Assembly: GCA_000708835.1 (NCBI GenBank)
Contig: DF237320.1
Location: 29,027 to 92,656 of the forward strand
Length of the DNA stretch: 63,630 nucleotides
DNA from: Klebsormidium nitens
Lineage: Eukaryota > Plantae > Klebsormidiophyceae
Direction of reading: 5' to 3'
The position numbers and the translations under genes were made by a program. The notes under the pieces are model-generated. The model saw only the letters and a program-made list of their open reading frames with translations. It was not told where the DNA came from and ran no database searches. Below are positions 1 through 56,759 of the stretch, piece by piece. The number at the start of each line of letters is the position of its first letter. Position 1 is the stretch's first letter.

Positions 1-2
1 AA

Positions 3-23802: not shown

Positions 23803-26091
23803 TTGATGACTGACACCATGAATCGCTCCGCTGCAAACGTCAGCCCTAAATCGCCGCTTGAGATTTCCCTTTCTGAGGACTGGCTGCGGCAACCTGTCAT
23901 CGTTGCTGTTATAGTACTGGTGGGCTTTTGTGTCTTCGTGGCCATTCCGTATAGCATGGGAGGGTTGGAGGGCGGAGGAGCCGGCTACTCAACAGCGATT
24001 TCAACTCACTCCGCTGTGCGTCAAGGGCTCCACATGCTGGCGGGCAGAGGGTTTGACGTAAAAGGTGGGGCTCAAGATTAGTCCAGGCCCTTCTAGCCTA
24101 CTTGTCTGGGTGAATCAAGATCAAATAAGAGATGCTCCTTTTCATCCTTCTTCGCATAGAATGACTTCTGAGCACCCTGATTAAAGCTAATTCAAAATGC
24201 TTAAATAAGGGCCTCACTTGATTGCTTATGCCTTGTTGCAAGCTGCATTGCAGTTTCTGAGTAGGTCGAACTAGTGTAGTAACCTGGTCGTTCATCAAGA
24301 GGAGGCTCACACCGGATCTAGGATCCAAAGCTAAATTTCAGGGCAGTCAAGCCTCCACTTTAACCAATCTGCAAAGATTACAGATGTACAACATCTTATA
24401 GACAGAGTATCTTGCAAGATGAGAAGCTCGCTAGCTGTGTCTGGGTACCTCTTCTTCTCTAACAAATGCTTGATCTCTTATACAAAAGGTACCGTTTTGC
24501 CATTCTGCTTCATCCAGACGTGCTCTGCCTCAACACTGTTGCTTTGATGTAGCGCCGTACGATGCTGAGGCGCAGCATGAGCAGCTTCTCAAACAAGCGA
24601 TTCAAACCATGGAGGAAAATATTGTTCGGAGGGAGGGCTATGTAAGCCCCTGGCACAGCGGCCACATCAAAGACCAGAAGGTGAGAGCACTGATCAGGAG
24701 AAAGGAAACATCGAATGTGAATCCTGATCAAAGCGTAACTGGTAGGGTGCTAGCATGATTACTTTGTTTCAGGCTATCACTTTTGTCTGCAAGTCTTGAA
24801 ACTTTACGAACTACTTGGAGGCCTCAAGGGGTCCTCCTTGCAACCCACGATCTCTCTGCTTCCTGAAAATGACAAAGCATACTGATTCACATGGATCAGC
24901 CAGCTAGCTTTGTAGCCTCAGTATGATCAGAAGACAAATTCGTCCGAAGAGTCTGGTCTTGTCAGACGGGCTCATTTGATTGAAATGTCAAGGCCCTCCA
25001 GTGAGACTTGGAACAATATGCTTTTGATCACTGGACGGCTTGATATGTACTTGAAAAGTGGTTGACAATCACGGCAGACCTTCTGACACTGGCATCCGCA
25101 CCCTCATTGGCACGGGTGGAGCATCTTAGAACCGTGTCTATTGCAGGAGGTCTACCTGAAGGAGCTGCTGGAGTACTGGGTGCCCATCTATCCATGCTAC
25201 CGCGAAGTCCGCTACGGTCTGATGGGCGATGGCGGCAAGTGGTTGTGCAATGCGCACCGGCTCAACGAGCAAAGCGTCATCTACAGCATAGGGAGCAATG
25301 CGCAGACGGACTTCGAAATGGAACTGATCGGTGCCACTGGAGCGGAGGTCCACGTCTTCGATTGCACATTGAAGGAGGCAGACGTGGTCAAAGTGTCCAG
25401 CCTGTCCCCGCTACTGTTCTTCCACCCCTGGTGCCTCGCAGAGAAAACGAATCTGGCAAGTGACGTGTGCGACATTTGAGTTCGCCTCCAAAGCTGTTCC
25501 ACTGCAGTGCGCTGGTTGGAAGTGCGGTGTACGTTAGGGACCGACCGATGGTTCAACATGAAGGAGAAATCAGATTGCGTACTCTTACGTTCGGACCTGC
25601 AGTTGTCGACAACCTGAGGATCAATGTCAAAAAACTGCGTGGACGCTGTAAATCTGGAGTCCACAGTGAAGCGTGACTTGAATCCACCTTTTGGCTGTGG
25701 CGAAGACATTTGCACCTGATCACACCTTTGTATCACTGACAAAGTCCGCCCACATGGTTGTGTGCAGGAGAAAAACGTTTACAGCCTGACGGACATTATG
25801 TTCAACCTCGGCCACCCGTTTCTGGACGTGCTGAAAGTTGACTGCGAGAGATGCGAGTTTACCAGCTTCAAGTCCTTCTTGTCACGCCTGGTCTATGAGC
25901 GCTCCAATCCACCTGTCGGTCAGTTTCTGGTGGAGACCCATAACGATGCCAGAGACGACCACAAACTTGTTGACACGTTCCTGAGGGAGTTGGAGACCGC
26001 GGGGTTTCGGCTGTTCCATATGGAACCCAATTGGCGCTGGTGGCCGCAAGGCGCCGAATGGGCGTTTGTGAATCCGTCAAGATTGAAATAG
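23803..26091 (+). CDS. Type-II membrane SAM-dependent methyltransferase, Methyltransf_22 / METTL24-like (putative glycan O-methyltransferase)
   Basis: TM VIVAVIVLVGFCVFVAIPY; exons ~23803-24049, 24518-24641, 25147-25464, 25768-26091; motifs GDGGKWLC, VIYSIGSN, EVHVFDCT, DVLKVDCE, QFLVETH, GFRLFHMEPN. Confidence 0.85.
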
Positions 26092-27565
26092 GCGAAGCGT
26101 GTAAGCATCAATGTCGCATCCCAAGTTGGTCAATCAAAAGGAACAGTTTGAATAGGAAGCAGAAGTACAGACGCCCCCGATCTGCCCACGTACACAAAGC
26201 AGCCTACTCGTGAAAAAAACTGAGCCACGCAAAAACGTTTGTTGTTTGGATTAGCTGATTGACCACAGCCATTTTGACGGTATCCAAAGCCTCGATCCAG
26301 ATAAATGATTTAGTCATACGTGGAAGGTCACACATTTATCGTTTAGTACGTTTTAAATATAGTAGCGAGTATTGAACACCATGTGCAGGGCCGGGTGTAT
26401 TGTTTTAAGCGACCTTTGGCTGGACTAGGTTCGATCAAAATAAAGCGGAACAGGCTCGTATATTCACTCTCATGGACATAGTTCCCTTGTCTATAAAGGA
26501 TTCAACTTAACACTAGTTGCGCCTTCATGTATAATATGCTGCAAATTTGAAGACAGAATACGCTCACCATTCTAAGCATGTTCGGAGAGCCTTGATTCGC
26601 GGAGCAAAAGTTGAAAACGAGAGCCTCTGCCACGTTACGTCGATGGACTAGATATTCCACTCATGATGGTACATCAAGTTCAATATTATGTTGAAGCTCA
26701 TACGTCCAGACTCACCAGGCTACCGCGGCTCAGCGGGCCATTTTACATTGTCTTATGCTTACGGCCTACCCTATGCGTTCATTTGGCCAAATATACATGC
26801 ACTGAGTCAGCAGGTTACCAGGACTCGGATGCATCAGAAATCACCGGGGTAAAGGCCATTGAGCCACCGTGACGGCGTCCGCCTGAATAACTCGGTGTAC
26901 ATGAGGACTTACTAGCTGGCCATCTCAGTTCTCTCTAAAGTTCTCTAAGTTTTAAATCCGTCATACACGATCAGTAGGTAGCGGACGTTGTCTTCTCAAG
27001 CGGGCCCCCCTAGCTAAGTTGGTGTCCAACGATTTGCTGTCAGGCGGCTAGTAAGCAACCTCAACGTCTCCACTGTCAAGCTGTTCACTATATGCTCGAA
27101 AAGAACGGCTCGCTGTGATTAGATTGTTAGCCTGGGGACTCACTTGCACTCCGTTTGCAGTACATCAGCGGACTGTGAGGTTGAAGTTTCTTTGCATGCC
27201 GCTATAAAAGGTCCCCGAGAAGCGTGAACGACACAAGAGCAGGGCAGCTAGCGAGCTAGGCGGCTACCATGCAGCAAGCTCTAAACGTTGCAAACCGAAC
27301 GACCTTCAATATCTAGCGGCCCAGATCCGCCTCGCGCTGGGCCAGAAAAGCTTCCGCGAGTCAAATTATCATGCTCAATTAACTCTATAAATAAGGAGTC
27401 TGCACGTGACGCAAAAGAAATTTCAAGCGCCGAAAGCGGCGCGCGCGCGCCGCTCGGCCATCAAGGTCACCGGCCGCGTACGCTCAAGGACAATCAAGCT
27501 TTACTTAATTTTGTTTTGATTGGCATGCCGATGCTCATCCTTAGTGATCGGCGGTGTCGTTTCAG

Positions 27566-28215: not shown

Positions 28216-28223
28216 GGGAAGAA

Positions 28224-29300
28224 TTAATCGAATTTGTCTCTCAATTCTTTCAACACAAAGAGCTCGTTCACTTGGCAATACTGCAGTACACGAGATCTTT
28301 CATTGGGGTACTTCACGCTGAGGTTGTATCTGCGGGTAATCTCGTACTCAATCTTCTGTTGAGCGGGTGTAAATCTCGACGGATCCTGCTTCGTTTTCAC
28401 TAGATACATAGACCGATTGTAGCTAAGCCTTTCGATCGGCTTCTCTCGCCACATCTCCTTCTGCAGTTTCTCTGGATTGAAATGCGTGTCGAGAGCGAGA
28501 AGGCGGCTATACCAGTAGTCCGGCGCGCAAGCCAGCTCCGCTGTCTGATTCAGCGCCGACATCATGGTCCTCATTGTCCCCACCAAGTGCCGATCTTGAA
28601 ATCCGCCATAGTCTTCTTCGATGGGCATATAAACCTGCCCATCTTCTATCGAGTCAAAGATGTTCTGATGCTCGCACAGGTATAGCTCGTCAGGCCGCGA
28701 GTAAACGACGTAGTCGTACTTATCCAGCAGGTTGAAGTACGCCAGCTTTTGCTGCGTGAACCAGCGGTACGCGAGGATGATCCCAGTGGCGGTTCCGTGT
28801 CTGCAACCCCCCAGGCCCCCCATGAAAAACCCTTGAACCCCGCACACTTTTCGCCACGTGCTGTTGCCAGCCGGATTATCAGTGCACGTCGTGGCAACCT
28901 CGTCCCAGACCAGCCCCCAGTCCGCGTACTCGGGCACCGTCCAGTCGTATTGGGCGACGCGGTGAAGAAGTGTATCCTTACGATCCCCGCTGAAACATAG
29001 CGCCAGGTGTGCGTTGTACGGTTGCAGCAGATTCTTCACGAGGGACCGCCATGCCAGCTCCCCGCCGCGGGCCTGACCAAAGAGAACCACGAGGATGCGC
29101 GGGCGCTGCATCTCTTTCCGCATCCATAAATACGTCCGCTCAAGGTCTTTACTAAGCGAGTTCCGTAAGGTGCTCCTTCGAGAAGATTCAGGTGCGTCAA
29201 TATTCCTAGCCGGAACTGGCGACGGGGCCTCCCGATGCTGGCGCCCGGCATCTTTGATATGAGGGTTCGCACCTTCGCCCGCGTGTTGGGATACAATCAC
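28224..29300 (-). CDS. DUF7796-like putative glycosyltransferase (intronless catalytic region; 5' end unresolved)
   Basis: RILVVLFGQARGGEL, YDYVVYSRPD, VYMPIEEDYGGFQDRHLVG and FNPEKL parallel the plant DUF7796 motifs as recalled (GGARRFEL, YDWIVRTRVD, YGGLNDR, LNSE). Confidence 0.65.
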   Translation of the reverse strand: MIVSQHAGEGANPHIKDAGRQHREAPSPVPARNIDAPESSRRSTLRNSLSKDLERTYLWMRKEMQRPRILVVLFGQARGGELAWRSLVKNLLQPYNAHLALCFSGDRKDTLLHRVAQYDWTVPEYADWGLVWDEVATTCTDNPAGNSTWRKVCGVQGFFMGGLGGCRHGTATGIILAYRWFTQQKLAYFNLLDKYDYVVYSRPDELYLCEHQNIFDSIEDGQVYMPIEEDYGGFQDRHLVGTMRTMMSALNQTAELACAPDYWYSRLLALDTHFNPEKLQKEMWREKPIERLSYNRSMYLVKTKQDPSRFTPAQQKIEYEITRRYNLSVKYPNERSRVLQYCQVNELFVLKELRDKFD

Positions 29301-30362
29301 CTGGAGTTGGGCCGCAATATCATACAGCGTCGAAGTGCTGAGACAAGATCGGCACGGGACAGATTAGAACCTTGGAAGTAACAGCGGCAGTGCATGCTAA
29401 GACTAAAACAGTAGATGCTACTTCCCGTTACGACTTGTGGAGCCGAACTCTTGTTGTAGGAGATTTTTGAGAAGCGAAAAAGTTCGCCCATGGAAGGAAG
29501 GTCTCATCGGTTAAGTAAACATGACAGAATGTTTCATCTTTTCACCAAAAATCTTTTGGAAGCAAGGCCGCCCGTCAATGGCACAGTCAATTGCCGGTTT
29601 TCAATTGCGGAAGTTTCAAGGGGTTTCGTGTAAGCTAGTAGCTTCGAACGGAGCGGAAGGAGATCGTAGAACCAAATGTCTTGAGAATTGACCCAAAGGA
29701 GCAAAACTATTAGAGCTCCACTTTACGGTCTGCTAGACCTGCGTAACTTGTCAGGCCATAGATAAAAAATTACCGGTGAGGGGAAGGATGGCGAGCCCGT
29801 ACAGAAGTATCAATTACTGACTTGGGAGCTGGTAGCCAGTAAGAGCAGGGTCCGGCCAGATGCGCAAGGGCCATAATGTCCAACCATGCATAAACTCCTG
29901 GTCCAGAAGGTCTACTTTCAACATTCACTCCGCACTGCTTATGGCGCAATCTTTATCAGCTTCATTGTCTTTTCCTTATTGTGATTTGGACACAACGTAA
30001 CAAGTGATGGTGGTGAGACGTACACATATTGCGGTGTTCCGCCACTACTAAAAAGACGCACAGCCCAAAAAAGCACCGGTTTCGAATTACGAAGCTACTA
30101 AAAGATCTGCATTCCAAGCCTGATGCAGCTTTTTGTTGGATCTATTTTTCGGAGCTAGGCCACACTTGTGATCAGTCGCCAGGAAAAGTCAAACCAGAGA
30201 GCACTTCCAGCCACCCGGGAACTGTATACTCGTATCAAGGAAAGGATCCAATGACGTCACTTAACTTTGGGGCAGTAGAATACTGTAGTTCTAACATCAT
30301 TTCGTGTCTCCCTTGCACAATCTTTTGAGAAACAGGATCAAAATTTATTTTGCGCCGCTTGC

Positions 30363-31451
30363 TCACCTTTGTGTCTTTACTCGAATCGGAGCTCTGTTCA
30401 AGCCAGCATCCTTCAGCTCCAGCAGGCTCTCAACGACGTCATCGACGTAAGCAAATGTGCGACGCCTATTTGCCCCACGCAAAGAGACAGATATGTACGC
30501 TGGATTATTGATTCCTTGTTGGATCAGATCTCGTATGGCCAAATCAGCAGCCGGCGTGGCCCCAAGCAAGACATAATCGTGAGGGCCATATGCACAGTCT
30601 ATTCTTAACACGCCAACTTTAAAATCCGCCGTCTTTTCCGAAGTGGCTTCGTTTTCTCCCATAGCTTTCATCCAATTATGGGTGTTCGCTCCAGTTATGA
30701 CAGGAGGCGGCAATATTCTGGACATATACCAGCCCGTTGGTATTGCTGCTGCCACATAGATATAATTGGGTATGCCGTTCCGCTTGCAGGAGTTCAAAGA
30801 CAGTGTATTAATCAGGACGTTATCATCAAAGTACGGATCCGTGCCATCTTGGTCGTCAGCGACTCCCGTCATAATAGCAAGGTGGTAGACATAGTCGGCT
30901 CCACGCAGGTATCTTTCCGAGCTCTCCCCTATCCTGAGGTCTGCATGACAGAAGTCTCGAGAGACGTTGATAGCCCAGGAACCATTTTCAATTTGGAGGT
31001 TTCGTAGCTGACCCCGCCATAGGTTATCGATAACTTTGATCTGCTCGCTCGGGACTACTCCGCTAAGCTTCTTGACCAGATTGCTGCCGATAAAACCTGC
31101 ACCACCGGTTACTATGAAGCGCGGCCGGGGCGTGTCTGGTTGAAAGAGACCATGAGCTTCGCCGTGGAAGGGACACCCCTTGCCAGCAATGTCTGGGAAG
31201 TCTGAATGCAGGATATCTCCCGCAGCTTCTGCTGCTGAATAGATCCGTTTGCTTGTGTATTTTTGATCAGGTTTCTGGGCTGGTTCAAAGTGTAGCCCTT
31301 GAAATACATTTTGCGCTTCCAGACTCCACCTGGAAGGTGGGCTCAAAAGCAGGGTGGAGGGCTCTGCCGCGTCCCGGAATCGCTGCAAGCCCAAGAAAAG
31401 AATACTGAGGGTCACCCCGAGGGGCAAGACGTAACCTTGCGAGAGACCCAT
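30363..31451 (-). CDS. Type-II membrane NAD-dependent epimerase/dehydratase-like protein (GDP-mannose-3,5-epimerase-like SDR) with altered catalytic residues; 3' exon(s) unresolved
   Basis: ATG at 31451; TM VLPLGVTLSILFLGL; FIVTGGAGFIGSNLV, VIDNLWRG, VYHLA, RIDCAYGP, RTFAYVDDVV; ends at donor AG|GTGAGC. Confidence 0.85.
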   Translation of the reverse strand: MGLSQGYVLPLGVTLSILFLGLQRFRDAAEPSTLLLSPPSRWSLEAQNVFQGLHFEPAQKPDQKYTSKRIYSAAEAAGDILHSDFPDIAGKGCPFHGEAHGLFQPDTPRPRFIVTGGAGFIGSNLVKKLSGVVPSEQIKVIDNLWRGQLRNLQIENGSWAINVSRDFCHADLRIGESSERYLRGADYVYHLAIMTGVADDQDGTDPYFDDNVLINTLSLNSCKRNGIPNYIYVAAAIPTGWYMSRILPPPVITGANTHNWMKAMGENEATSEKTADFKVGVLRIDCAYGPHDYVLLGATPAADLAIRDLIQQGINNPAYISVSLRGANRRRTFAYVDDVVESLLELKDAGLNRAPIRVKTQR

Positions 31452-34220
31452 TGACCTGTAAGCTTCAACACATTTGCAGGCTAGCTTGCAATGCTTTCTC
31501 TTGCCTTGCAGCCTTACAAATACGAGAGACAACCTTCCATCCCCGTGCGTGTGGCAATGCTGTTTTGTGACGTGTAATAGCAGGAAGCTTGCGGTGTGAC
31601 ACAAGCGCAGGCCATAACAAGTGAAGAGATGCTCTAAACCAAAAATAAGGACCAGTGGGCCTAAATGTATCTAGCTTAGTCAAGCGGCGCGCCGGCCTTG
31701 GACGCACTGATTGAGAAGTCAACCGATCCGTTCAGGAGCAGATCAAGCAGCTGGACGTGGTATATGACAGACCAATAGGCTCAGACTTCACTCCCATGCC
31801 AGACCTGATCAACAAGATTGTGCAATGCGGAGGTTCAGTCTAGTCAGCTCTTCCCTCACTCAGACTACGACTTCAAGTTGCAGATAGCTAGCTTCTGGGA
31901 CGTCCTGTTAAAAATACCGGTATAACGTGTAGACTGTCCAATTGGGCTGCACCGGGGGCTGCACCAACAACAAAGATCTATTTCTGCAGCTCCTTATCGT
32001 CTTGTACTCAAAATCCCTTACTTACCGTAATCGGCTAAGAATGCATTGGAACCGCCGTGTCTGCAAACATGTGAGGGTTGAAACTCCGCAAGTGCATTGA
32101 ATCTTAAGAAATTTCTCGACTCCAAAGCAAACGAACGAATCTACGATAATGACGTGACGCACGAATGCAGCCCGGCCGCGGAAGGACGTATTTCATGCGG
32201 CCCCAATGTCGGCGGGCCGGAGACGAAGTGCTTCATGCCTGTGATTGTTTCAGTCAACATAATCATGACCACAACTTTGTGACCGCACAATATCAATTTT
32301 GAATAATTACTCAAGCTTTTAAGCTCGACAGATCCATTGAACCTTCAACCGGTCATGTCATTCTGTCATGCAGCGGCCTCCCCCAGTCGTACTGCAGATT
32401 CACTGAACCAGGTCCGGCGCATAAGGCATTTGACGGTCGCGATCGACACAATTGACGTCATCTATTTTATACTACTAGTGTCTACTAGTGATCGCAATCG
32501 TCAGCTCACGTGCAGGTGTACGCAGATCGACGACATACCTAACTTAATATCACAAATGTACGCTTACAGCGCATGCGGCCAGCTTGGGCCTCGCGGCCGG
32601 CGCACCGCTAACCCTTCCTACTTTTTACTGAACTTCTCAGCACACGCCATACCTAGAATATTGCCCTGTTTCTACATAAATGGCCGTTTATCGTCGAAAC
32701 CGGTGAATTTGGTGACGGGAGCGCGGGCAAGTGCGGCAGAATCTTGTGACGGATTAGCACGTACAGCACTTTATCGAACGGAATCTACAGCCAAATGACG
32801 AGCCCGTCGAAAATGACTCCTCGGGAGTTCTCGATTGAGCGACCTTCCATGCTAATATATGTACATCTCTGTCGCCGGACTTTACAACTCAGGAAAAGGT
32901 GGATGAAAGAGAATTCGTATCGATCTGTTTTAACCGTACAGTCAACAGTAACCTACCGTAATTTTACCAATCGGTATAAGTTTGATTGACCTGGTAGGCA
33001 ATCCCGGTAGACTGTACTGAAAGCAAACCGACCACTATACCCAGTCCAAAAGCTACCCGGCTACCCGGTAGCTAAGCTCGGTACTTCGTTCCGCGCTTCC
33101 GGCAACCGTGGTCCCCGACAATCTGTAGGCGGAGTTCAGTATCACATCGTAGATTATTTTTCAATCTCTAGCTACTGCAACTACCGGTGATAGTCCCATC
33201 TGAGTAGGCTGACGTCGCTGTTCGACGGTACGGGTAAAACGACTGAGCCTGGCCGGCCGGCCGGCCGGCCGGCGCGCGAGCCGCTCAGCTAAGGCTTCAA
33301 TATCATTGAAAGTTGCCGTCTTGCTGCGCCGCGGCCCCGGTCTGCCAGGCGCGGCGGGCAGGTCGAGCCTGGGTCACTATGTACCTACTAAGATGAAGTA
33401 ATGGCAAAGTAGAGGAGTCCATACTAGGCAAGTAACTACAGTGGTACCCTCGGGAGGCGGCTGGCCGGGGTCTTCGAATGTCGTCTAATCGTCCATCTAA
33501 CAAAGTGCGTTTAAGGCCGTCTCCGAGTCGGCGTGGAGCAACCCCAAGTAGAGTAGTAGCTCAGCCAATCACAGAGTGTGTTACCTGCATATACTAATAG
33601 ACGAAGATCATTATGTGCTCACCCCGGTGGGGTAAAAACGGCGCGGGCCGGCACGGTTGTGCAGTCCTAGGGGCATTTAATGATCGAGTGGCACGACTCG
33701 TCCTCAGGCAATTACCGATGAGCCGATATTGTGAGGGCGCCGAAGCCTCTGAGGCGGCCGTGAGTCCAAATAAGAAGAATATATAATGGGTTGTTGAGAA
33801 TATCGCATCAAGCAAACAAGGCTTTTGAGGCCACCAGGAAACTTTCAGCAACAGTGGTCCTCCAGTGGTCAGTCGAAATTGATACGCTGCACAACAGTCT
33901 GCGTGTTGTTCGATCGAGCCTTCCGAGCCCGAGCTGTCATTTAGTCATACTACACTGCTAGCATCGCCACTAGCAAGGCCAGCTCAAGGTGAGCAACAAT
34001 CTGGTAGATCCGCAAATGCGGACTCGAGCTCTACGGAGTCTGTAGATGGAGCTTCAGACCTATGAAGTCATTTCCTGACACTCACCACGATGCGCGGTAC
34101 TATTTTCCATGCTCCTCATCTGAATTCAACGACCATCAAAATCTGAGGCAACCATCAATCAGTGCCCCTATCTGCGCCTAGTGTGCTGTTTAATTCCAAG
34201 CGGCTTGGCTGCTCAGCATC

Positions 34221-36126
34221 ATGGTTGATGCTGCTTGGCTGCCACCGGCGGTGCGCAGAGAGGCCACACAACGCCTTCTTCTGCTCTGCGTCATCACGGC
34301 TGTTGTTTTAGGGGGTCCTCTGCTGGTCACCAGTGGCGGCTGTCAGCTGGGGAGTCTTGCGAGCTTTCGAATCGCACAGATCGTCTTGGAGTCGAGTAAC
34401 AGCGCTCCCGTCACTCCCAGCGGTCTGAGTCAACCAGAAGAGACACGAACTCACGCTTTAGCACTTCTGCGGGCGCAGTCCTGGGGCTCCGCCTTCCACC
34501 AAGCAAAGCTGCTGGAGACAGTTGGTTATATGGGCGAGGAGGAGCGGCCCACTGGGCTTTGCTACGAAAACCGATCCATGGCGGATTTCACCATCCAAGC
34601 GGAAGATTTAAGAGCACAGAATGTCAGCACCTTTGTGCCCCTCTACTTCAACATTCAGGAAGCGAAGGCCCCCTCTCCCGGCAAACGTGGGCTTGGAGGC
34701 AAATACTTCTATATCAGTGTGGAAGGGAGGCCTTGGGCAGATCCTGGCACGGTGGTGCGCCTGCCACAGCCCCTTGTTTGGGATCACAGCAATGGATCTT
34801 ACACGGTTGCCTTTGAAGTCTATGACGAGGACGTCACGTACAATATCACTGTTTCTCTGTGGCATGCGGGGTATGCGGGGTACCTGGGGAATCTGAGGGA
34901 TTTCCACTGGGGCGACTGCTGCCCAGCGCTGCCGCAGATGACATTCCTAGAGTCCTTCACCTTTTCTACCAGAATTATGAGGCCTGACCAAGCCAACGCA
35001 ACAACAGCGCCGAATCACGGACAAAGTGATCAACGGCGAAGAAGTTCACCTCTGGGCTTTATCCCCCATATTCTTTTGAAAGCGAGTGCCCTTCCTGAGC
35101 ATGACGTGCAAGAACAGAGTCTGCCAGTGAAGCCTTCAATGATGGGTCCTCCAATGCGGATTGGTGCAGCAGACGAAGAGAATCCCGCTTTATATCAAGC
35201 AGCACTTGTCTGCCCCGACTCGAGATCTTTCCCAACGTGTCACTCTGCAGGCCGGGGTCGGTGGTTGAACGATTATTGGGAGCCTGCCGACTGCCCCTAC
35301 ACGCAGTTTAGTAATGAAAGCCTGAGGCAATGTGCGGAAAGAAACGGGCCTTTTCACATTACGTTAGTGGGAGATTCGTTGATGCGGGGGCTCTTCTTTG
35401 ATACGCGGGAGATCTTGTCCGGCAAGCGGCCGGACCAAAGCCAGGCGGGGCACCATGACGAGGAACCGGTGGAAGAGGCGCCCGGCTTCACACTTGAATT
35501 CAAGTGGACTCCACACTCGGCAGCTCTGCACCCGCGATTACAGAATGGGGACTTTTTCAGTAACACCTCGTCCGTCCTTGTATTCAACACACTGCAATGG
35601 GACCTTGCGAGACCCTCGCCGAGTGGATGATTACCTCGAAGCGACAAGGCGGTTCGTAGACGCGTTGGTCGAAGCGCGGGGTAGGTTCCGCAAGATCATA
35701 TGGCGGACGGGAGCAGCCGTGCACCACTTTGGCCCCGCCTCTTGCGACGCCAACTGTTCTATGGACGGCTTTATTATTGGCCCGAGGGGCGAACTGTACA
35801 ATTCTGCGGTTCGCTTCTTGGTGGAGGCAACGCCCGGGGTCGACGTACTAGACATGTGGCAGATTAGTTCAGGGAGGCCTGACTTGCAGCACGCCTTCCA
35901 CTGGGACGCGAGATATATCAGGCACGCTATCGTGTCTAAAAGCGTAGGTAATGTGCTTTTGAATATGCTGTGCAGCGAAGTAGTTCAAGTTAAGGTTAAG
36001 GGCAACTTAGTTGCATGTACGCTTTACTTTTATCTTAATTTACGCTTTACTCCGAGTACCGAGCGTCCGAGTATTGACGGAGTTTCGGATCCTGCTCTGC
36101 GCTATCCCGTTATCAATTATCCATGA
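34221..36126 (+). CDS. NXPE-like protein (Ig-like/neurexophilin region plus PC-esterase/SGNH domain), putative glycan O-acetyltransferase; +1 frameshift at ~35622
   Basis: TM LLLLCVITAVVLGGPLLV; GGKYFYISVEG...DHSNGSYTVAF; GRWLNDYWEPADC...CAER...ITLVGDSLMR; VFNTLQWDL; second frame IIWRT...VLDMW...RPDLQH...NVLLNMLC. Confidence 0.8.
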
Positions 36127-37487
36127 TTACGGCTTGCTTTTCTACTCATTCACCACTTACACGCGAACACCGGACGTTGATGCCCAGCAACTTCAAACCG
36201 GCCGCTTCTGCTGCTTGACCAAGGGTGAAATACGGCCGCCAAATCCATTGAAGCCTCAGTGGATCCAAATGTTCACATGGATGCTGCATGGCAGAAAGCG
36301 CTACACGAGCGCCTTCGAGCTTCGAGCTTCTAGTGATGGACAACGAGAATCTGATCCCGCTTCGAAGGATATCTAGTGAATTGACTTCAACTAGCTAGGT
36401 GCTTGATTCGCGATTACCGGCGTCATATGCAAGTCCCAATGGAAGAATTTGCTCTAGGTTAATCTCACGAGCTGAATCGACTAGCTAGTCTGTACCTTGC
36501 GAAGTAAAGGGCATGCTAGATTGCAGCATGTGTTGCCGCTCCATTTGATTGAAAAGTGAGCATGATGTAAGCAGAAGATCCAGCGTACATGAACACGATG
36601 CAGATTGTATGCGATGCCCAAGTTTCTGAGGGGTTATTTTCGAACTGTGCAGAAGTTACGATGTTTATGTGAGGTGATATTCTCCTACACGCCGTACTAG
36701 GCATATAGTCGTAGGCTTCTCATGGCATATATGATACAAACCGCCGCCGGAATGTCAGTAAATTGCAAAGAGTACAATCAGTCATATGCATTTAGCTTAA
36801 AAGAGTGAGGACATTTATTTACTTTGTCATTCGGAACCTCCTTCAGGACGAATGCTGGCAATTGTGCAATTCTGCATGAAACTGCACAGCTCGAAGTCAT
36901 CACGGTTTGACGGCACACCTTGGCTAAAAAACACTGGCAAGCGGAATCAACTGCAACCCGGTTCACTGAGCGATCAGTGACTGATCGCTCTTGCAGTTGG
37001 AAACAGCAAAAGTTTGATGATCGAGAAACAGATGATCCCCCTATTGTGACAAACAACTGTCGAATATGCAGTTAAGGACTTTCTTGACTAATATAGAAAT
37101 TCACGTGTTCTTGCGTCCATTTCTATATGGGTCCATTTGATGCCCCAAACCTCTGAAATACGTTGGGATCAGAATGAAGGCTTATAGACGTCTAAACTAG
37201 ATAAACCGCCCTATAGGTGAAGATCAGTGAGCTAGCTTACAGGCGTTATACATGCGCGATATCGATCGAAATGTGAAAATTCTATTCAGAAACTTCTGGA
37301 CCGATGCAAACGTTACTTCTTCAAGCAGCGGGTCTTTTGGTGTGGATACGCAGACCTTAATGGCTTCAATAGAGTCAGATCACATTCGTATCCAATTCAC
37401 CGACACAACCTATACTTCCACTTTACTGTCCGGGCCCTTCAAGCTATATCGTCTCAAACGGCAGCAAGACTCCTCCGTGTAGCCAGA

Positions 37488-40560: not shown

Positions 40561-40993
40561 CACTTTGAAGTGGCACCCGGCCCCTTAGAAATTGTGTGGG
40601 GGGGGGGGGGTTCAGTTGCTTCAGCCAATCGAAGGTGGGGAAGGGGGGGGGGGGTAAATGCCTTTAATTCACTTGGGGCGAAGCCCCAGCCGGATTTCAG
40701 CTGAAGAACATTCTTTTCAAGCTAATTTATCATCTTTTACCCCACGGGTCAGAGATTCTACACCATGAATGCAACAAAGAAGCTCTTTTCAACGTTAAAA
40801 AGGGGGCGAATTCATGCATACGACACTATTATTTTTGTCCAATTAAAGCAATTGCCCGGGTGGTGGCTGTTTGACCGGGGCCTTGACCTTTTTTCTGAAG
40901 ACAAGGCCAAGAGAGGGGGGGGGCTTGAGACCCTCCAGCCAAAGTGCCTCTACTAGCTAGCTAAAACAACTAACCGGGTGCCACTTCAAAGTG
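40561..40993. mobile_element. MITE, 433 bp, with perfect 20-bp CAC-initiated TIRs and internal poly-G tracts
   Basis: CACTTTGAAGTGGCACCCGG (40561-80) / CCGGGTGCCACTTCAAAGTG (40974-93); no matching TSD seen. Confidence 0.75.
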
Positions 40994-41174
40994 CTAAACA
41001 CCATTGATGTCGGCGCCGGCCGGGCCGGCCAGCCGTACGGGTCTTTGCCGGAGCCCGGGGGCTCAATTGGCAATAAAGTTGCGAAGCCGGATCCGAAGTT
41101 AGTAAGTGCTTCCGAGTACGTAAGAGCCGGTACCTACTTAGTACTTTACAAAAGCAAAAGCAACCGTGTACGTA

Positions 41175-41418
41175 ATGCCATTGTGAATTTGCAAAAAAAA
41201 AAACTATTTTTGCCCAGGTCGAAATTTCTCAGAAATTATTCCCTGCCTGGTCGAAAAGTTGGAAATGAAAAAACCAAGTTATTTGGACCTAAGAATGCTT
41301 GTTTAGCGGGAAAAATGGGCAAAAACGAAAACAAAAATAGATTATTCTAACCGATGCGAAACCAAAACAACTTTAAAAATAATTGTTCGCGGTGTTTGGG
41401 TGCGAATTCAAATGGCAG
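41175..41418. mobile_element. AT-rich MITE with imperfect ~18-bp TIRs flanked by TA (Tc1/mariner-like)
   Basis: TA|ATGCCATTGTGAATTTGCA ... TGCGAATTCAAATGGCAG|TA; A-run-rich interior. Confidence 0.5.
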
Positions 41419-45073: not shown

Positions 45074-48000
45074 TCAGGATACGAACCCCTTGGCAAACCT
45101 CATCACACACGCAGCGAAATCACCCCGCATTTCCTCCACCTGTGCTCCTCCTCCCAATTTAGGCACAGTTCCTCCCCAATCAATCCGTCTCCGTTTGGAA
45201 TTGGACGCTTCGCTAACTCTGGCTCCGAAGCCCCCCTCCCCTTCTCCGTCTACATATCCCTGCCCCTGCGAGGCGCGCCCACGTTGCCGTAATATTGCTT
45301 GTTGCTGCCCTTCACCGGAAACACTAAGTGGCGAATATGGTTCCTTTCGCAGTACTGGGGAGGTGCTCTGGTCTAGGAAGTCCATCAGCACCTGCTTGAT
45401 AGAGGACAAGGGAAAATGTGGATTGCATGGGTTCAGAATTAGCTGGATTTTCATCTTAGTCCTTTCAAGCCCCGGCAACTTGAATCGAGGCGCGCGTCAC
45501 TGTAACGAGATGTTTTCCCTTCTCTTGTGGATTTTTACGACGTACGTTTTGATCGAAAAACATTCTTTGAGACAATCACTGGGAGCTCAAAGTCCTAGGT
45601 CTTCTTAGCGCAAGCTTGAATATATTACTCGAAGGGAATGAAGACGAGGTACGAGCCACTTTACTTCTGTCAGGGGCTTAATTGCTCAGCTCTCGAGCTG
45701 AAATTTTGCAGTCGCCGCATGCGAACGGGATACAAGATCAAAACCTCTCAGGATTAAGGGCTGCGAACGAATCATCGGAGATATATAGTGGATGCGCACT
45801 CAGGACATCAGATTTTTCTAGGATTCTGAAACTGTGAAACTGCTTACGTTGAGAGGAAGCCAGACTGGGAGTGTGTTCGAGTTCATCAAATAAGAGCCCA
45901 TATCAGTGCTCAAGGAATGTGCTTTGATCAGAATCGCGAGGTGGCCAACTTCAGGTACTCAGAAGGGGATTGCTCTTTGAGTTACTGCTCAACTGTGAGC
46001 ACGGGTACACGTAAATACTCTCACAAAAGTATGCTTTTACACAAAAGGGCCGTGATCAAAGAAAAGACAGCTTCTTCAACAGTCTTTGATGGAGATCTTC
46101 AAACACCGTGACGTACCTCGCTGATTCCCGCACTGTAAAGCCCAATGTCGTCGAACGCCTTCCACGCTTCCACCCCCGTGTCACCTCCTGTCCGCCTTTC
46201 TAAATTCCTATCCGGCCAGTCCCGCAAAGCCCCTAACCCGTCGTCTCCCAGTCCCGGAAACTGCTGCCAGAACGATCCGCTGAATTTCTCCACTGCGTGA
46301 TTAGAACTTTGCACCGGGGCTAACGGGTGCGACTCTTCATGCTGACGCGCAGTGGACGTGCGGGCGTCGAGAGGGACTGACGGGCGCCCGGGCGTCAGTT
46401 GAATGCTCGGCGTCAGACATCCCCCTGCGGATGGCCAGGCGTGTAAGCCGTCCACCGGAAGGTGCTCGCTCAAACAATCTGGTGTCGGGAGAGGATCCAA
46501 CGAGTGCCACACTCCGGGGTTCCGCCTCCCAGGAGGCAGCTTCCGCGGCCGGAAAGCAGCACTCTCTGCTTGTTGAATCTGCTGCGATGACGGGGATTCG
46601 ACGTGCGGCGCTTCATCAGGCTGACCGTTTTCTCGCCGGGCTGAGGCCCCTGGTGTGACAGCGGCTGACGTATTTGGGGATACCTCCGGAAGCTCAAGGC
46701 TGGCGAGACCCACCGGCTCGTCAAAACGGGTTCCGTTTTCTTTCGCTTCTCCGATGGCGGCCCCGTCCGGCTCTAGTCTTGCCCCGGACTCCCACACTTC
46801 AGACGGCTGGTGAAGTTGACGTGGGCGACCTACAGCATACTCTGTTGGAAAGTCGTCGGCACGGCACGCTAGGGGTCTTTGACTTGTTGGAGCTGTTGCG
46901 CCTCCGTTTTTCGGGGACGGGTATTGCGCTCCCCAAATAGCGGCAGCCGGAACCGTTGTCCTGACAATAGGAGCTTCTTCCAAAGACGAGCCGGTTGGCG
47001 GTACAGCCACTGACAAGCTTCCACGTGGCCCTTTCACCGGCAACTGGTTCAGCGTAATTTCCGTGTAAGCTGCCAAAGCGATCACGGATTCTTTGTTTGC
47101 TTCTGGGGCTACAGAGTCTGCGGAGACAATCCACCGTGAAGCCCCTGTAGCGTGACAGCAGGACAGCATCAGAAGGAGTTGAACTTGAAACGCTTCATGA
47201 CCAAAACCGAAACAAACATAGAAGGCTCATCCGAGCCATAATGCTGTCTTCTCCATCTTTCCATTGGCCCTGATAGTTTCCAAAGATTACTCGCTCGTTC
47301 AACCGGCCGCTACGGATTGAAAGGTGTTTCCCTTCTTTAGCTACACGACCTTGAGAGTCAATCAACGCCAGGCGATGCGGCAAATGCTGCATGCATGCAG
47401 CAGGACCTGGTGCGAACATTGCAGCTAGACCTCGCTGAATGACGAAGAACCTAACTTGAAACAGTTGAACAATCATAAAAGCTGCTACGGACTCCAATTA
47501 TCAGCCATTGCGAAACACCTCAAACCTCCGAGTCCCCCCCGGCATGCTAGAAAAGACATTCTCAAAGAAAACACAGAGAGCACGCAGAATGTTGATCGAT
47601 CACTGGCAGTACTTAGAGAGTCACTCAGAGAGCAACTCTGTGCGTGTCTTGTTAAAACATCGGGCCGGCGTTAGATTTCCTGGATAAGTATGCTTCTTTT
47701 TTCAATTACCCCTGGTTGAGGTTGAAAGTAGGCATGGAACAACAAACTGCTTTCGAGCTTCTCACCATGAGCAACACTTGCTCTTCCAATCTCGTAGTCG
47801 TCATTCCGCGTGCCGAAATCCTTATCCCAGGTCTCCTTGAACGGGCCCGTCCGCCGTGAACACTTGCCCGTTAATTGAAGCTCCTCCAACAGCGCGCCAA
47901 AGCGCTCGAGAGTTTCCTCTCCCGATGCTACAAACTTGGCGCAGGGCAAAGGAGCAGGAGCGCTATTGGGCCAGATCAGACTCAACTCCTCTTTCCTTGA

Positions 48001-49128
48001 CAGCTTTTGGCTGCCCGCAAATCCATTTTTCAATTCCGCTCCCCCTTGCAAACCCGCCTCTTCCCAATTAGAAGGGAGCGAAACCCGCTGCACCTTTGCT
48101 TCGTCTTCTCCGAGTCTTCGCTTGAAGGCTGATCCAGCAGCCCGCCTCCCACCCAACGGATTTGAGCCAACGCTCCGATTTCGACCTTCTCCGGTCGGTA
48201 GCTTAGCCGCAGCCTGAATTCTCCCCGGCTGCCGTCCGCAACCGTCCGTCTCTGGTCTGCAGCGGTTTGCCTCTTCCCTGCAGGCGTCCGCTTGTTGTCC
48301 GCAGCCGTCCGCTTTTCGTTCCTGGCCGCCAGACTCCCGACTGCTGCCGACTGATTGCCGTCCGCAACCGTTTGCTTGCCGTCCGCAGGCATCCGCAGGC
48401 AACCGGCGGACCTCCGCTTCGGCAGCTGTTCCCGTTGCGTGACAACTAGCAACGTCCCCTCCGTTAGTCGCCCCAGCTTTCTTTAGGACTCGCCCATCCG
48501 AAGGACCACTAGCGCGCACTGCATTTTCTACATGCCGGGGGGCCACTGTCTCACCACTGCCTCCTCGACCGGTTTGCACACCACTGGTTGGCTCAACCCT
48601 GTGCTCTAAAGTGCTCCTTTGGCTCCACTGCAGCTGGTCTCCCCTTTCGAGTATCTCAGGGGAAGCGGTTGGCAGCAGAGCGCTACTCCGTCCCTTTGGA
48701 AGGGCTGTCTCCGCCGCGACGCGTCTCGTATGAGCCTCGAGGAGGGCTTTCCAAGCCCTGCTCTTCCCCACCCCCTTGCCTACGTTTCTCCAGACGATGG
48801 GCCGCAGCCTGGCTGGCAGATCCGCATGCTTGCCTAAAGCCGTGACCCTTTTCATCTCAAAGTTCACCTCTCCTTCTTCAGCAGCAGGAATTACCAGGTC
48901 CGCAAAGGCCCACTCCGTCAGTCTTGGAATGAGGACTTCGTTGTCTCCCGGAAGGTTAGACCGGGCTCCGCAGGCCCTCAACAAGAGTCCCGGACCACTG
49001 CTGCCACCCTCCATCTGTTTAAAATGCAGCTTTGGGGGAACTATTGGATCTTTGTTCAACAGGAGTCTTGAGGGACTCGGACATCATGGATGGTCTTCTG
49101 TAGTACGGCTCCCACTGGTAGCTCCTCC
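45074..49128 (-). CDS. Large multi-exon hypothetical, largely disordered protein; in-frame TGA at 49084-49086 in the 5'-most visible exon
   Basis: Long ORFs 47671..49059, 46099..47169 and 45074..45478 with donors G|GTAATT and GAG|GTACGT and acceptor GCTACAG; no family recognised. Confidence 0.55.
48225..48410 (-). repeat. Coding 21-bp minisatellite encoding (A)D(G/A)CGRQ-like heptads
   Basis: ADACGRQ ANGCGRQ ... ADGCGQQ ADACREE ANRCRPE TDGCGRQ; plus strand shows TGCCGTCCGCA repeats. Confidence 0.7.
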
Positions 49129-51660: not shown

Positions 51661-52323
51661 GGACAATGATTTCAAGGAAAAAAAAAAAANNNNNNNNNNN
51701 NNNNNNNNNNNNNNNNNNNNNNNNNNNNNNNNNNNNNNNNNNNNNNNNNNNNNNNNNNNNNNNNNNNNNNNNNNNNNNNNNNNNNNNNNNNNNNNNNNNN
51801 NNNNNNNNNNNNNNNNNNNNNNNNNNNNNNNNNNNNNNNNNNNNNNNNNNNNNNNNNNNNNNNNNNNNNNNNNNNNNNNNNNNNNNNNNNNNNNNNNNNN
51901 NNNNNNNNNNNNNNNNNNNNNNNNNNNNNNNNNNNNNNNNNNNNNNNNNNNNNNNNNNNNNNNNNNNNNNNNNNNNNNNNNNNNNNNNNNNNNNNNNNNN
52001 NNNNNNNNNNNNNNNNNNNNNNNNNNNNNNNNNNNNNNNNNNNNNNNNNNNNNNNNNNNNNNNNNNNNNNNNNNNNNNNNNNNNNNNNNNNNNNNNNNNN
52101 NNNNNNNNNNNNNNNNNNNNNNNNNNNNNNNNNNNNNNNNNNNNNNNNNNNNNNNNNNNNNNNNNNNNNNNNNNNNNNNNNNNNNNNNNNNNNNNNNNNN
52201 NNNNNNNNNNNNNNNNNNNNNNNNNNNNNNNNNNNNNNNNNNNNNNNNNNNNNNNNNNNNNNNNNNNNNNNNNNNNNNNNNNNNNNNNNNNNNNNNNNNN
52301 NNATGACGGACAATGATTTCAAG
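51661..52323. mobile_element. Gapped insertion flanked by a 16-bp direct repeat (TSD), starting with an A12 run; probable short non-LTR retroelement
   Basis: GGACAATGATTTCAAG at 51661-76 and 52308-23; inside are G + A12, 613 N and ATGAC. Confidence 0.65.
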
Positions 52324-53299: not shown

Positions 53300-56200
53300 A
53301 TGCTGAAGCTGGCCAAAATGTACCGGCGCTTTGGGACCAGGCTGTTTGGATCTCCGGGGGACAAGAAGCTGGTCTTCACCTTCTGCGCATTCTTCTTCCT
53401 TAATGCGGTTCTGCAAGGCTTCCTTGCCGGGTTCCTGGGCGCTGTTATCAGCGCGCCTCCCTCATCAAATTGCCTCCATTTGGCGCAGCTCGAGTCAGTT
53501 TCCCGAGGGACGGTTTTGAGAGGCGGGGAATCAAAGGCTCTGCGTATCGCTGTTGTTAGCTCATACCCGCCGCAGGCTTGTGGAATTGCAGAGTTCACAA
53601 GGGATTTGCTTGTGAAAGGGTTTCAGAAGACTGCTCTAGCGGAGTCCAAAGTGGAGGTCAGCATTGTTGTGATTGATGAGGAGAACACGGAGCGGGCATA
53701 TGGGCCGGAAGTGGCGGCTGTTTTTAGGAAACACGTGGCTTCAGATTACGTTTTAGCCGCAGATCTTCTCAATTCTGATTTTGATGTCGTGAGCCTGCAA
53801 CACGAATATGGCATCTTTGGCGGGGAGTGGGGCGAGCTGATCCTCCTCCTGCTTCAACGGCTCTCAATACCAGTGGTCACAAACTTCCATACCGTCCTTC
53901 CAGATCCCACAGTCCAGTCCCGCAAGGTCCTCATTGAGATCGCCCATCTGTCCAACATGGTCACCGTCATGCTCCCATCGCTCTGCGAGCACTTGAATCT
54001 GCACTACACTGAGAATATCACGTGTCTTTTCATGCCTCATGGAGCGCCGTTGGAGGAGCAAGGGCATCCCCCAGATCTCGAGGCGCTTCGTATATCCAGT
54101 GACAGGAGTATCATCCTGTCGCCTGGACTTCTGTCTCCCAACAAGGGCATTGAGTCTATGATATCTGCAATGAGCACTTTGCAGAAGAAACTTCCCAAAG
54201 CACTGTACGTGATCGTTGGGAGGCAGCACCCTGGGTTGAGGGGAAGAGACTATCTGGGAGAACTGCGCCAGTTGGTGCAAGAAATGGATTTGGAGACCTC
54301 GGTACTCTTTGTGCCTCTGTACCAGACGAAGGAACAGCTGATTGGCTGGATCTCCCAATCTCATATTGTAGTGACCCCCTACGAAGATCGGACTCAGGTG
54401 AGCAACTCACGACTGGCCCCTCTGCTATCTCCAATGGGTCTAAGGTGCTGTCCCTGTAGCTCGCAATCTGAAACTCAAATCGTTCATGAGAGAACCTTAG
54501 GAACATACTCTTGACGAATCACACAAGATTGTCGGGACGCACATCTGTCTCGGAAAAGTTTCTATTCTGGTGGCTATCAATCAACGGCTGCAGATTTGCC
54601 CTCGATTTCGTGCATTCGCTCCTGTATGGATGGTACATATCCAGATCGTATCGATCACATCAGGATCTTCCGTGAAAAGCTTTCGGTGGACCAGCCTTCG
54701 ACTGAGTTATTCACACAGTTGTAGCTGACGTTGCAGCTAGGTGATGCACCGATGCTTTATTCTCCCTTAAGTTTCAACACCTGCTCTCACACTGAGTCAT
54801 GCACTGGAAGATTTCAACCTTTTCTTCTCTACTTACTCTGCAGGTTAGTTCTGGCACCCTTTCGATGACTGTCGGTCTCGGGCGGGTCGCCGTCACCACC
54901 GCCTTCCCGTACGCCCAGTGGCTCTGCCGCGCCGTTAACGAGATGGCCGCCACAGCCGTGCAGCCGTGCATGACCGTCCCCTTCGCGGAGGACCTCGGCC
55001 CGGAGCTCGCATCAGCGTTGCTTGCTATCCTGGGTAACGACACGCTCCAGCAGGCGATGCGGGGCGCAGCCTTTGAGCACGGGCGGCGGGCGCAGTGGAC
55101 CAGCGTTTCGAAGGAGTGGGTCGACTTACTACGGCAGGCGGCAGTTCGAAACCGGGCGTCTTTGCTGGCACGAAGGGGAGAGTGGGCCGCGCTAGCAGCG
55201 TCCGCGTATGAGGCAGGCGCCGTGAGCGATCGGCGTTTGCACAAAGTTCCGGTGTCCCCAACCGACGGGAGGGTGATGAAGGTCTGGGCGAGCGACCTCG
55301 CTCGAGATGTTATAATGGGCAATCGGAAGGCGGAGGAGTCGGCCAAAGTCCTCTCGGACCTGACATTGGGCCCCTTACGATTTGCGGCGCGCGTTGATTC
55401 TGACGAGACGGAGTGCATGGCTGAGACTGGCGGCCTTGGGTCCTTCTTCACAAGCAACGGGATAGCGGCTTTTCATGGTCAGGTGAGTGGCCATGACAGC
55501 TTGTTTCCAAGTTCCGTCTCAAAGAGTCGTGTTTAGACGAAGCGCAACTGAAAAGCTCGGGAAGAGAGAGCACTTCGCGTCTACGGGTAAGGAGACCCAA
55601 AAATTGGAAGAGCACAAAGACGTGTTTTTGGCAGGTTGTGACAGGAGTGCTTGCACTTAGAAGCCTCGTTTGAAACAGCTAACTGAATTCAGGCACGTCT
55701 CTCAGTGGAATATATCGAGGCGCGTGGAGCGCTTACCCGGCAAACGCGCTAAACAGCTCCAAATAGATTCTAACAAATGTCAACGCTGACCGTTAATTGT
55801 GACTTCAAAGACGTTGCAAACTAGCTGACGTTGATGCAAGGTTGGACCAAAGCAGTCCTTTGAATCCCTGACTCAGTGATCTTGGCACTCCTGATGCTGA
55901 TGTCTGAGCTTATTCTTTCTCGTTCTTGCGGCAGGTCCGAAAGGACGACTACGTCTTTCTCCACACCCTGCCCGACAAAGGTCTGCTGTTAGGAAGCGGG
56001 TTGCGTTATGGCGGTATGTTCGTCAACTATGTGATCGACGGGGATATGACGGGGGAGCGCGCTTATCCTGCGGAGTGGTCCTTCTCGTGCCAGGGCTCCA
56101 ATAGCGTATTGAGGATGAAGAGCGTTCTGAAGCACCCTGTGAAGAGCAGCGTAATTGTCGGGGAGGTGGATATGAGCTTCAACCTGGACGGTAGCACGTC

Positions 56201-56759
56201 GCTCCTGACGTGGACCGCTCGCGTGAGGAGTTTCGAAGATTGCCTCGACAACGTCGAGGTGCAGTCCGCAATGGACGGGATGTCGACTCTGTTCGAGAAC
56301 CTGCACTTCAACCAGTTCTATGCAGTGTCCCCAACGGACGGCATCGTGGGCGTCAAGAGTGCGGTCGAGGATATTGAGCTGTACAACCAGGAACTGGACG
56401 GGCCGCTTGCCTGGGACGTTTTCACCAACAAAGAAGGGGAGTTCGCGCTTATTACTGTGATCAGGAACCAGACGACTCTGCGATATATTACTGGCCACGA
56501 CCCGACTAATGAGAACTTCCATTATACGGTCCACAGGTACCATGTCGGGAGCATCTGCCCTTGGGACCCGCCGCTTATAATCGTCGAGGACAGGATCATA
56601 CTGCATAATATGGATCTGGATAATGTAGAGAGCTATGCTCAAGTTATTGACAGAATCTCGGAGCTGACTGGAGTAGACGTGTCTGGTCCCGAGAATAAGG
56701 CGCTTGTGGAAGAAGCGTTCCAAGTGCTAGCCTACCATACCAGTACAGCTTCTATCTAG
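53300..56759 (+). CDS. GT4 glycosyltransferase (bacterial mannosyltransferase-like subfamily) with N-terminal anchor and unassigned ~300-aa C-terminal domain; three exons (53300-54397, 54844-55482, 55935-56759), ~853 aa
   Basis: RIAVVSSYPPQACGIAEFTRDL, LQHEYGIFGG, VVTNFHT, GLLSPNKGIE, TPYEDRTQ|VSSGTL; both introns phase 0 with canonical sites. Confidence 0.9.

Follow-up and report, generated by a model that had tools for sequence, protein, structure and literature searches.

A partly conserved, loosely organised neighbourhood of putative glycan-processing genes, one of them frameshifted, in the streptophyte alga Klebsormidium nitens

This study concerns a group of genes for putative glycan-processing enzymes in the streptophyte alga Klebsormidium nitens, which lies within a stretch of 63,630 nucleotides (the window) covering record positions 29,027-92,656 of scaffold DF237320.1 (92,656 bp; assembly GCA_000708835.1) and reaching the scaffold end. 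All coordinates below are window positions. Between 23.8 and 56.8 kb we find seven genes, for which the public annotation is concordant with our own scans for open reading frames (ORFs) and Pfam domains. Six of them, within 33 kb, are of glycan type and belong to different Pfam families, and one is an unrelated interloper. The original prediction, made from the sequence alone, had counted seven enzymes from seven families here and had read them as an operon-like module making a methylated, acetylated Golgi glycan. Five of the families are confirmed by Pfam, DUF7796 is supported by an atlas feature search and the NXPE-like protein is identified by fold, but the seven enzyme-type domains are distributed over six genes, with the epimerase-like short-chain dehydrogenase/reductase (SDR) and DUF7796 annotated as one protein. 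The reading that we prefer, at a confidence a little short of even, is that of a real, partly conserved and loosely organised neighbourhood of six secretory-pathway glycan-processing genes and one unrelated gene, in which a small core is the part most likely to be functionally coupled. The evidence does not extend to a complete line of seven enzymes for a single methylated, acetylated glycan. The genes and features at the locus, with the glycosyltransferase (GT) genes named by family and lengths given in amino acids (aa), are as follows.

23803-26091, plus strand: Methyltransf_22 (MT22) gene, probably kfl00371_0090, annotated product 335 aa (Pfam PF13383)
28224-31451, minus strand: kfl00371_0100, SDR-DUF7796 as one 732-aa protein (public annotation and Pfam)
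exon 1 31451-30367, intron 30366-29338 (GTGAGC...TCTCAG), exon 2 29337-28224, minus strand: proposed structure of kfl00371_0100 (predicted splice)
34221-36126, plus strand: kfl00371_0110, NXPE/PC-esterase-like, intronless (RNA contigs, three-frame translation and fold)
37488-39725, minus strand: kfl00371_0120, GT90 (POGLUT-like), type-II membrane protein, 524 aa (RNA and Pfam GT90)
39725-39253, 38894-38643 and 38337-37488, minus strand: exons of the GT90 gene, with the mRNA at about 40300-36966 (RNA contigs)
42183-43382, plus strand: kfl00371_0130 (KFL_003710130), GT32-type, intronless, type-II, about 399 aa (Pfam Gly_transf_sug)
45074-49014, minus strand: kfl00371_0140, interrupting gene, 864 aa, low-complexity (annotation)
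51690-52302, no strand: assembly gap of 613 N, intergenic between kfl00371_0140 and the GT4 gene, crossed by no annotated gene
53300-56759, plus strand: kfl00371_0150, GT4 protein, 853 aa (annotation and Pfam Glycos_transf_1)

The strands of the seven annotated genes (23803-56759) alternate perfectly (+ - + - + - +), a pattern with a chance of about 1 in 64 for seven genes, which gives three head-to-head and three tail-to-tail pairs. Both divergent pairs that had been predicted, epimerase/NXPE and GT90/GT32, are borne out by the strands, and kfl00371_0140 with the GT4 gene forms a third. The single large unrelated gene said to interrupt the group is kfl00371_0140, in which we detected no Pfam match, anchor, hydrophobic segment or signal peptide. 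The six clear type-II anchors that had been claimed come down to five, in the MT22, NXPE-like, GT90, GT32 and GT4 proteins, whereas the SDR has only a short hydrophobic N-terminus and DUF7796 has none; the five N-terminal anchors suggest, as far as sequence can tell, a lumen-facing topology. The description of the genes as intron-poor holds for the NXPE-like and GT32 genes, the only intronless ones, but not for GT90 with two introns, SDR-DUF7796 with probably one, GT4 with probably two and MT22 with several exons. Among the large ORFs of the window outside 23.8-56.8 kb, the only Pfam match is to a protein kinase (12904-14241), which restricts the glycan-type genes to this span. As had been argued, tandem duplication is excluded as the source of the clustering because the families are non-homologous.

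The layout of kfl00371_0110 comprises a transmembrane anchor, an N-terminal domain and an SGNH domain. Its transcription was followed in Logan contigs of four runs from four studies, placed on 34101-40100; these runs behave as RNA, since the intergenic stretch 36301-36900 is uncovered and both GT90 introns are spliced out in all four. The transcript of kfl00371_0110 (about 33459-36102) is one continuous, unspliced contig identical to the genome in two of the runs (X1 and X5), and is absent from the other two. Its frame 0 (34221-35630) holds the anchor, the N-terminal region and the GDS block and ends in a stop codon at 35628-35630, and the last ~165 codons, which include the invariant His, lie in the +1 frame up to 36126. 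The frameshift thus separates the GDS serine from the invariant His, and no single frame holds both. A DNA alignment with a related alga places one extra C in K. nitens at 35603/35604 (GGGACCTTGCG versus GGGA-CTTGCG in the relative). Contig L002 of this relative (G+C 52%; like the contig L006 discussed below, a Logan contig from the same sample, SRR23617307) encodes an intact orthologue of 571 aa, P0003, which is 57% identical to the K. nitens protein over the first part and 81% over the part that is out of frame. Two possible causes of the frame change, a short intron and an assembly error, were considered and rejected, as RNA contigs from two studies cross the site without gap or mismatch and reveal no joint. 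Because the RNA contigs have the same base, the extra C is not an assembly error, and because the downstream part is otherwise free of defects, the lesion is recent. The public KFL_003710110 model (394 aa) looks wrong on this point, since the in-frame intron that it contains is left unspliced in the RNA contigs.

The assignment of kfl00371_0110 to the PC-esterase/SGNH proteins had to be made by fold. Pfam gave no match to PF13839 or PF24536 for the K. nitens pieces or for P0003, and an exact-protein look-up with the 469-aa NXPE ORF returned no record. When 1.84 billion cluster representatives were searched exhaustively without a profile, only 14 proteins came out at E <= 1e-3, three of which have sub-threshold matches to NXPE4_C or PC-Esterase, and the atlas feature search placed an NXPE_C cluster among the matches of the NXPE-like gene (0.93). 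The family alignment (A2) conserves GDSxMRG and one invariant His, and the clade carries H-x-D, with the Asp after the His, as against the canonical D-x-x-H. An AlphaFold2 model of residues 320-571 of P0003, the relative's intact orthologue, built with the family alignment, has a predicted local distance difference test score (pLDDT) of 80.1 and adopts the SGNH alpha/beta/alpha fold. The top Foldseek match of this model is XOAT1, a xylan O-acetyltransferase (E 4.3e-7); many GDSL/SGNH esterases come next, together with PatB, a peptidoglycan O-acetyltransferase. At the level of the modelled fold, therefore, the PC-esterase/SGNH assignment holds, and with it the family named in the original prediction; in K. 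nitens, however, the gene is broken by the frameshift. By sequence comparison, the NXPE-like genes form a small, divergent algal branch of PC-esterase-like proteins. With the plant TBL/XOAT1 O-acetyltransferases (PDB 6cci) they share a type-II anchor, a lumen-facing SGNH domain, the GDS serine and the catalytic His, and they differ in having no above-threshold Pfam PC-Esterase match, in the H-x-D motif, in an extra N-terminal region of about 320 aa and, for the K. nitens copy, in the frameshift. The animal NXPE proteins (NXPE4_C, PF24536) have a similar overall layout, in which an SGNH-like domain at the C-terminus comes after a separate N-terminal one, but no Pfam threshold is reached by the K. 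nitens gene or by its orthologue. The N-terminal region of P0003 may be a beta-sandwich domain preceding the SGNH domain. Residues 124-195 (L002 8220-8435) weakly resemble a filamin/gelation-factor Ig-like repeat, below significance (E 0.6).

The introns of the GT90 gene, 38338-38642 and 38895-39252, are canonical and are spliced in contigs of all four runs, and the spliced model equals the annotated 524 aa, with a transmembrane segment at residues 11-41. The match to PF05686 (75-81 bits, 81.1 against a cut-off of 24) is above the gathering score. The closest solved structures to the catalytic exon are POGLUT2 (4e-22) and POGLUT1 (5.6e-13), in a comparison that contained no capsule-type GT90 structure. 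The exon used alone as a homologue query gave no match within the length window (the full protein has 524 aa). With the protein O-glucosyltransferases POGLUT1 and POGLUT2 (Rumi/KDELC), the K. nitens GT90 thus shares the Pfam family and the nearest structures, but not an identified EGF-repeat substrate. In the divergent region between the GT90 and GT32 genes there is a perfect 20-nt inverted repeat (40561-40580 / 40974-40993) with arms about 400 nt apart. The GT32 protein matches Gly_transf_sug (PF04488) at 24.9 bits against a cut-off of 23, has its anchor at residues 48-69, and carries the DxD motif as DLD, within a WIDLDY that is conserved in the relative. The relative's GT32 is a single ORF of 428 aa, with 71% identity across the anchor and everything downstream of it. 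When the K. nitens GT32 ORF was used as a protein query, KFL_003710130 of K. nitens came back as a 100% identical entry; judged by the relative's sequence, however, the public model under that name (246 aa; 42222-43382) is wrong, in that it splices out an anchor and stem which the relative retains within a single ORF. In the atlas search the protein falls among Gly_transf_sug clusters (0.94), and its ten best family-carrying neighbours all belong to Gly_transf_sug or its clan. The protein homologue search with GT32 returned only the query itself (P0001), and the scan of metagenome contigs with its alignment found no related loci.

At the right end of the group, the GT4 protein consists of a transmembrane segment (residues 23-52), a GT4 (GT-B) catalytic domain that matches Glycos_transf_1 (PF00534) at 37.6 bits against a cut-off of 26.4, and an extension beyond the part matched by Pfam. 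The best-consensus splice solution that yields 853 aa gives likely introns at 54398-54843 and 55483-55934, one of which would split the GT-B domain. No solved relative of GT4 was found by sequence. The gene lies beyond an intergenic stretch of 4.3 kb, from the start codon of kfl00371_0140 (49014) to its own (53300), which contains one of the two N runs of the window (7773-8452 and 51690-52302). The 16-mer GGACAATGATTTCAAG is present on both flanks of this gap, at 51663-51678 and 52308-52323, with an A run after the left copy; the repeat may stem from contig ends that overlap or were collapsed, or from an insertion that duplicated its flanks.

At the left end, the MT22 gene opens with an exon that carries the transmembrane anchor (23803-24081; hydrophobic segment at residues 25-55 of exon 1). 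PF13383 is matched above the gathering score on two catalytic exons (~25141-25440 and ~25762-26091) at 61.8 and 35.2 bits, covering profile positions 51-251. There are at least three exons beyond the first, and the annotated gene starts left of 24221 and ends at 26091. Farther left, 10791-14594 holds a protein-kinase gene (Pkinase 1e-33 in 12904-14241). In positions 1-8000 the G+C skew is strongly positive (0.09-0.18) over two long plus-strand ORFs, 3063-4421 and 5289-6656, which have no Pfam match and are probably low-complexity coding sequence.

The SDR-DUF7796 gene, kfl00371_0100, has the layout of a short hydrophobic N-terminus, an atypical SDR (Rossmann) domain, a linker and a DUF7796-like domain. 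Enumeration of splice sites leaves exactly one GT..AG solution that yields the annotated 732 aa, with a canonical intron of 1029 nt. In the DUF7796 ORF itself there is no hydrophobic segment and no start codon close to the 5' end, which fits a fusion with the SDR; we regard the two as probably one fused gene, a candidate fusion with one intron. Judged by the RNA runs' share of sampled words, nearly all of 28.2-32 kb is apparently transcribed, which lends weak support to a single transcription unit. The SDR part matches Pfam Epimerase at 63 bits (with 3Beta_HSD matches as well), and its best Arabidopsis match is given as AT3G62830 (PMC9121098). In its N-terminal hydrophobic segment, Rossmann fold, Epimerase match and NAD(P)-binding GxxGxxG, here TGGAGFIGS and aligned with the motif of 8rdg, it resembles the extended SDR nucleotide-sugar epimerases and dehydratases such as UXS. 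It differs from them in the catalytic residues and in the substrate-binding part. YxxxK is absent throughout the SDR domain. In the alignment with a solved SDR, which has low confidence in this stretch, HNWMK stands opposite YGAAK and AAA opposite SSS, with Ala in the place of the catalytic Ser/Thr. The SDR ORF ends at position 222 of the 240 of the Epimerase profile, the C-terminal substrate-binding domain is absent with no further SDR-like exon in 29300-30363, and its place is taken in the annotated model by the linker and DUF7796. From these sequence features, this SDR cannot act as a canonical epimerase or dehydratase.

The DUF7796-like domain (28227-29300, minus strand) raises the question of a viral origin. 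It reaches 26.6 bits against PF25072 (cut-off 27), over profile positions 116-173 only, and a single-sequence AlphaFold2 model of it has a pLDDT of 33. The atlas feature search puts it near a DUF7796-carrying cluster (score 0.96, 213 shared features) whose members are 79% Nucleocytoviricota, with proteins of about 320 aa, and other close clusters are haptophyte; by these matches the family seems common to algae and giant viruses. Gene clusters with GTs, SDRs and methyltransferases are a known feature of giant viruses. One might accordingly see in the locus the domesticated remnant of a Nucleocytoviricota glycosylation cassette integrated in the algal genome, an idea that would suit the DUF7796 neighbours, some viral GT32/Caps_synth neighbours in the atlas and the two intronless genes. 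However, the large ORFs of the window contain no viral hallmark domain, the G+C matches that of the surrounding DNA, spliceosomal introns are present in four genes, GT32 has eukaryotic proteins as its best neighbours, and the taxa of atlas matches are not in themselves evidence of transfer. The introns, the host-like G+C and the want of hallmark genes disfavour a recent insertion, and we regard a viral origin as very improbable. No DUF7796 loci were found in the viral and metagenome contigs scanned.

Part of the grouping recurs in the related alga. On L002 the orthologues of the NXPE-like gene (plus strand, 57% identity) and of GT32 (minus strand, 71%) lie 7 kb apart, and on L006 an NXPE-like paralogue (P0007) lies 2.7 kb upstream of an orthologue of GT90 exon 1 (70% nucleotide identity). 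NXPE-like genes therefore adjoin GT32 or GT90 in both algae, a partial synteny, and the NXPE-like/GT pair is the part most likely to be functionally coupled. The numbers at the locus point the same way if all six glycan-type genes are counted. With a glycan-related fraction of 3-5% of the 17,290 genes, which is assumed rather than measured, and with independence assumed as well, at least six glycan-related genes among seven consecutive ones would be expected 1e-4 to 2e-3 times per genome by this rough estimate, and a neighbourhood formed purely by chance is unlikely.

The preferred reading of a partly conserved neighbourhood has to be weighed against a considerable body of contrary evidence. 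On L002, GT90 is not present between the NXPE-like and GT32 genes, and the 7.8 kb upstream of the NXPE-like gene carry a classical adh_short gene and no SDR-DUF7796 gene; gene order and orientation in the relative are unlike those in K. nitens. The more distant NXPE-like homologues have housekeeping or unrelated genes and no glycosyltransferases as neighbours. Counting only the secure glycan enzymes (GT90, GT32, GT4 and the PC-esterase-like protein; four of seven at about 2.5%), about 0.2 runs per genome would be expected, and the statistical case consequently depends on counting MT22, SDR and DUF7796, whose relation to glycans is putative. A comparison of the three divergent intergenic regions with one another found no common sequence or motif, and the adjacency of GT4 to the group rests on scaffolding, because the gap at 51690-52302 is unread. 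The broken member in turn argues against strong selection on a complete pathway.

Expression data add to these points. After 3 h of high light, 678 of the 17,290 K. nitens genes are repressed (Serrano-Perez et al. 2022, PMC9121098), among them kfl00371_0100 (from 49 to 10.6 fragments per kilobase per million, FPKM), kfl00371_0140 (2.7 to 0.57) and kfl00371_0150 (4.6 to 1.27), and the remaining four, _0090, _0110, _0120 and _0130, are in neither high-light list of that study. Three of seven co-repressed genes compare with ~0.3 expected by chance in this data set. However, the trio includes the unrelated kfl00371_0140, and the GT90/GT32/NXPE core does not follow, so that only two of the six glycan genes (SDR-DUF7796 and GT4) move together in the one usable expression data set. 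In the RNA runs, GT90 is transcribed and spliced in all four and the NXPE-like gene is transcribed in two; contig depth in these runs cannot rank the genes. The scaffold is absent from the supplements of an auxin study, and neither kfl00371 nor the relative's run identifier is mentioned in the literature searched.

These observations give substance to a neutral explanation, by which chance or regional chromatin effects in a genome rich in Golgi-glycan genes brought the genes together, each serving a different glycan with no shared pathway. The partial co-regulation that takes in an unrelated gene, the differing order and content in the relative, the strict count, and the presence of one broken and one catalytically atypical member are all what it would lead one to expect. 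Against it stand the NXPE-like family members that adjoin GT32 and GT90 in two species, and the run of six out of seven consecutive genes with secretory glycan-type domains, very unlikely under independence if all six count. We consider this neutral explanation quite possible, though not probable. The same data bear harder on the operon-like reading, in which a backbone GT, a side-chain GT90, an epimerase, a methyltransferase and an acetyltransferase would together make one methylated, O-acetylated Golgi glycan. All required enzyme classes are nominally present, and the perfect strand alternation with its three head-to-head pairs is in its favour. However, the acetyltransferase candidate is frameshifted, the SDR has neither the Ser/Tyr residues nor the substrate domain, the members have no common high-light response, synteny covers two or three of them only, and the solved structures nearest to the GT90 are those of protein O-glucosyltransferases, in a set that held no capsule-type GT90. 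We therefore judge the operon-like reading decidedly unlikely. It is also where the original prediction does not stand. The co-expression and synteny that it had proposed as checks gave mixed answers, with co-repression of three genes as against four unchanged in one data set, and with linkage of the NXPE-like gene to GT32 and of its paralogue to GT90 as against a missing SDR-DUF7796 gene and a different arrangement.

Within the preferred reading, the coupled core would be an NXPE/PC-esterase-type acyl-transferase or esterase adjoining a glycosyltransferase, either GT32 or GT90. By analogy with POGLUT-type GT90s and the XOAT1/TBL proteins, a secreted glycoprotein or wall glycan might receive a sugar from such a pair in the lumen of the Golgi or ER, with O-acylation to follow. 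MT22, SDR-DUF7796 and GT4 would be neighbours, with no shared product implied. The sequenced strain does not possess the proposed line in complete form: a single inserted base interrupts the esterase-like gene, and the SDR is non-canonical. A bolder version would have a conserved, selectable Golgi module of the klebsormidiophytes, NXPE/PC-esterase with GT90/GT32, that K. nitens extended by a methyltransferase, SDR-DUF7796 and GT4. The outcome would be a genuine biosynthetic cluster for a single wall or glycoprotein glycan, both acylated and methylated, and would have no precedent in the plant lineage; we think this unlikely.

Bacteria routinely group the non-homologous genes for a single glycan; eukaryotes rarely do so, the fungal galactosaminogalactan cluster being the clearest case. 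Like the K. nitens locus, the cluster of Aspergillus fumigatus (uge3, sph3, ega3, agd3, gtb3; PMC4817252) consists of eukaryotic, non-homologous neighbours for an extracellular glycan, a putative product in K. nitens, and the two share an SDR-type nucleotide-sugar enzyme, a transferase and a glycan-tailoring enzyme of esterase type. The fungal cluster is co-regulated and conserved across species, and each of its genes is genetically tied to one polymer (PMC4817252). The K. nitens locus, in contrast, shows partial co-regulation, synteny of two or three members, one broken member and an SDR without catalytic residues.

Independently of any cluster, the locus reveals a small, divergent PC-esterase-like family beside GT90/GT32 in two algae, an NXPE-like copy that is naturally frameshifted in the reference strain, an atypical SDR that is a candidate for fusion with DUF7796, and two public models to correct, the GT32 protein being about 399 aa rather than 246 and the NXPE-like model containing an unsupported in-frame intron. 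If a cluster in a streptophyte alga were verified, it would offer a shortcut to the enzymes for the unusual wall polymers of Klebsormidium and would suggest roles for families that have no function assigned, namely DUF7796, Methyltransf_22 and the NXPE-like branch.

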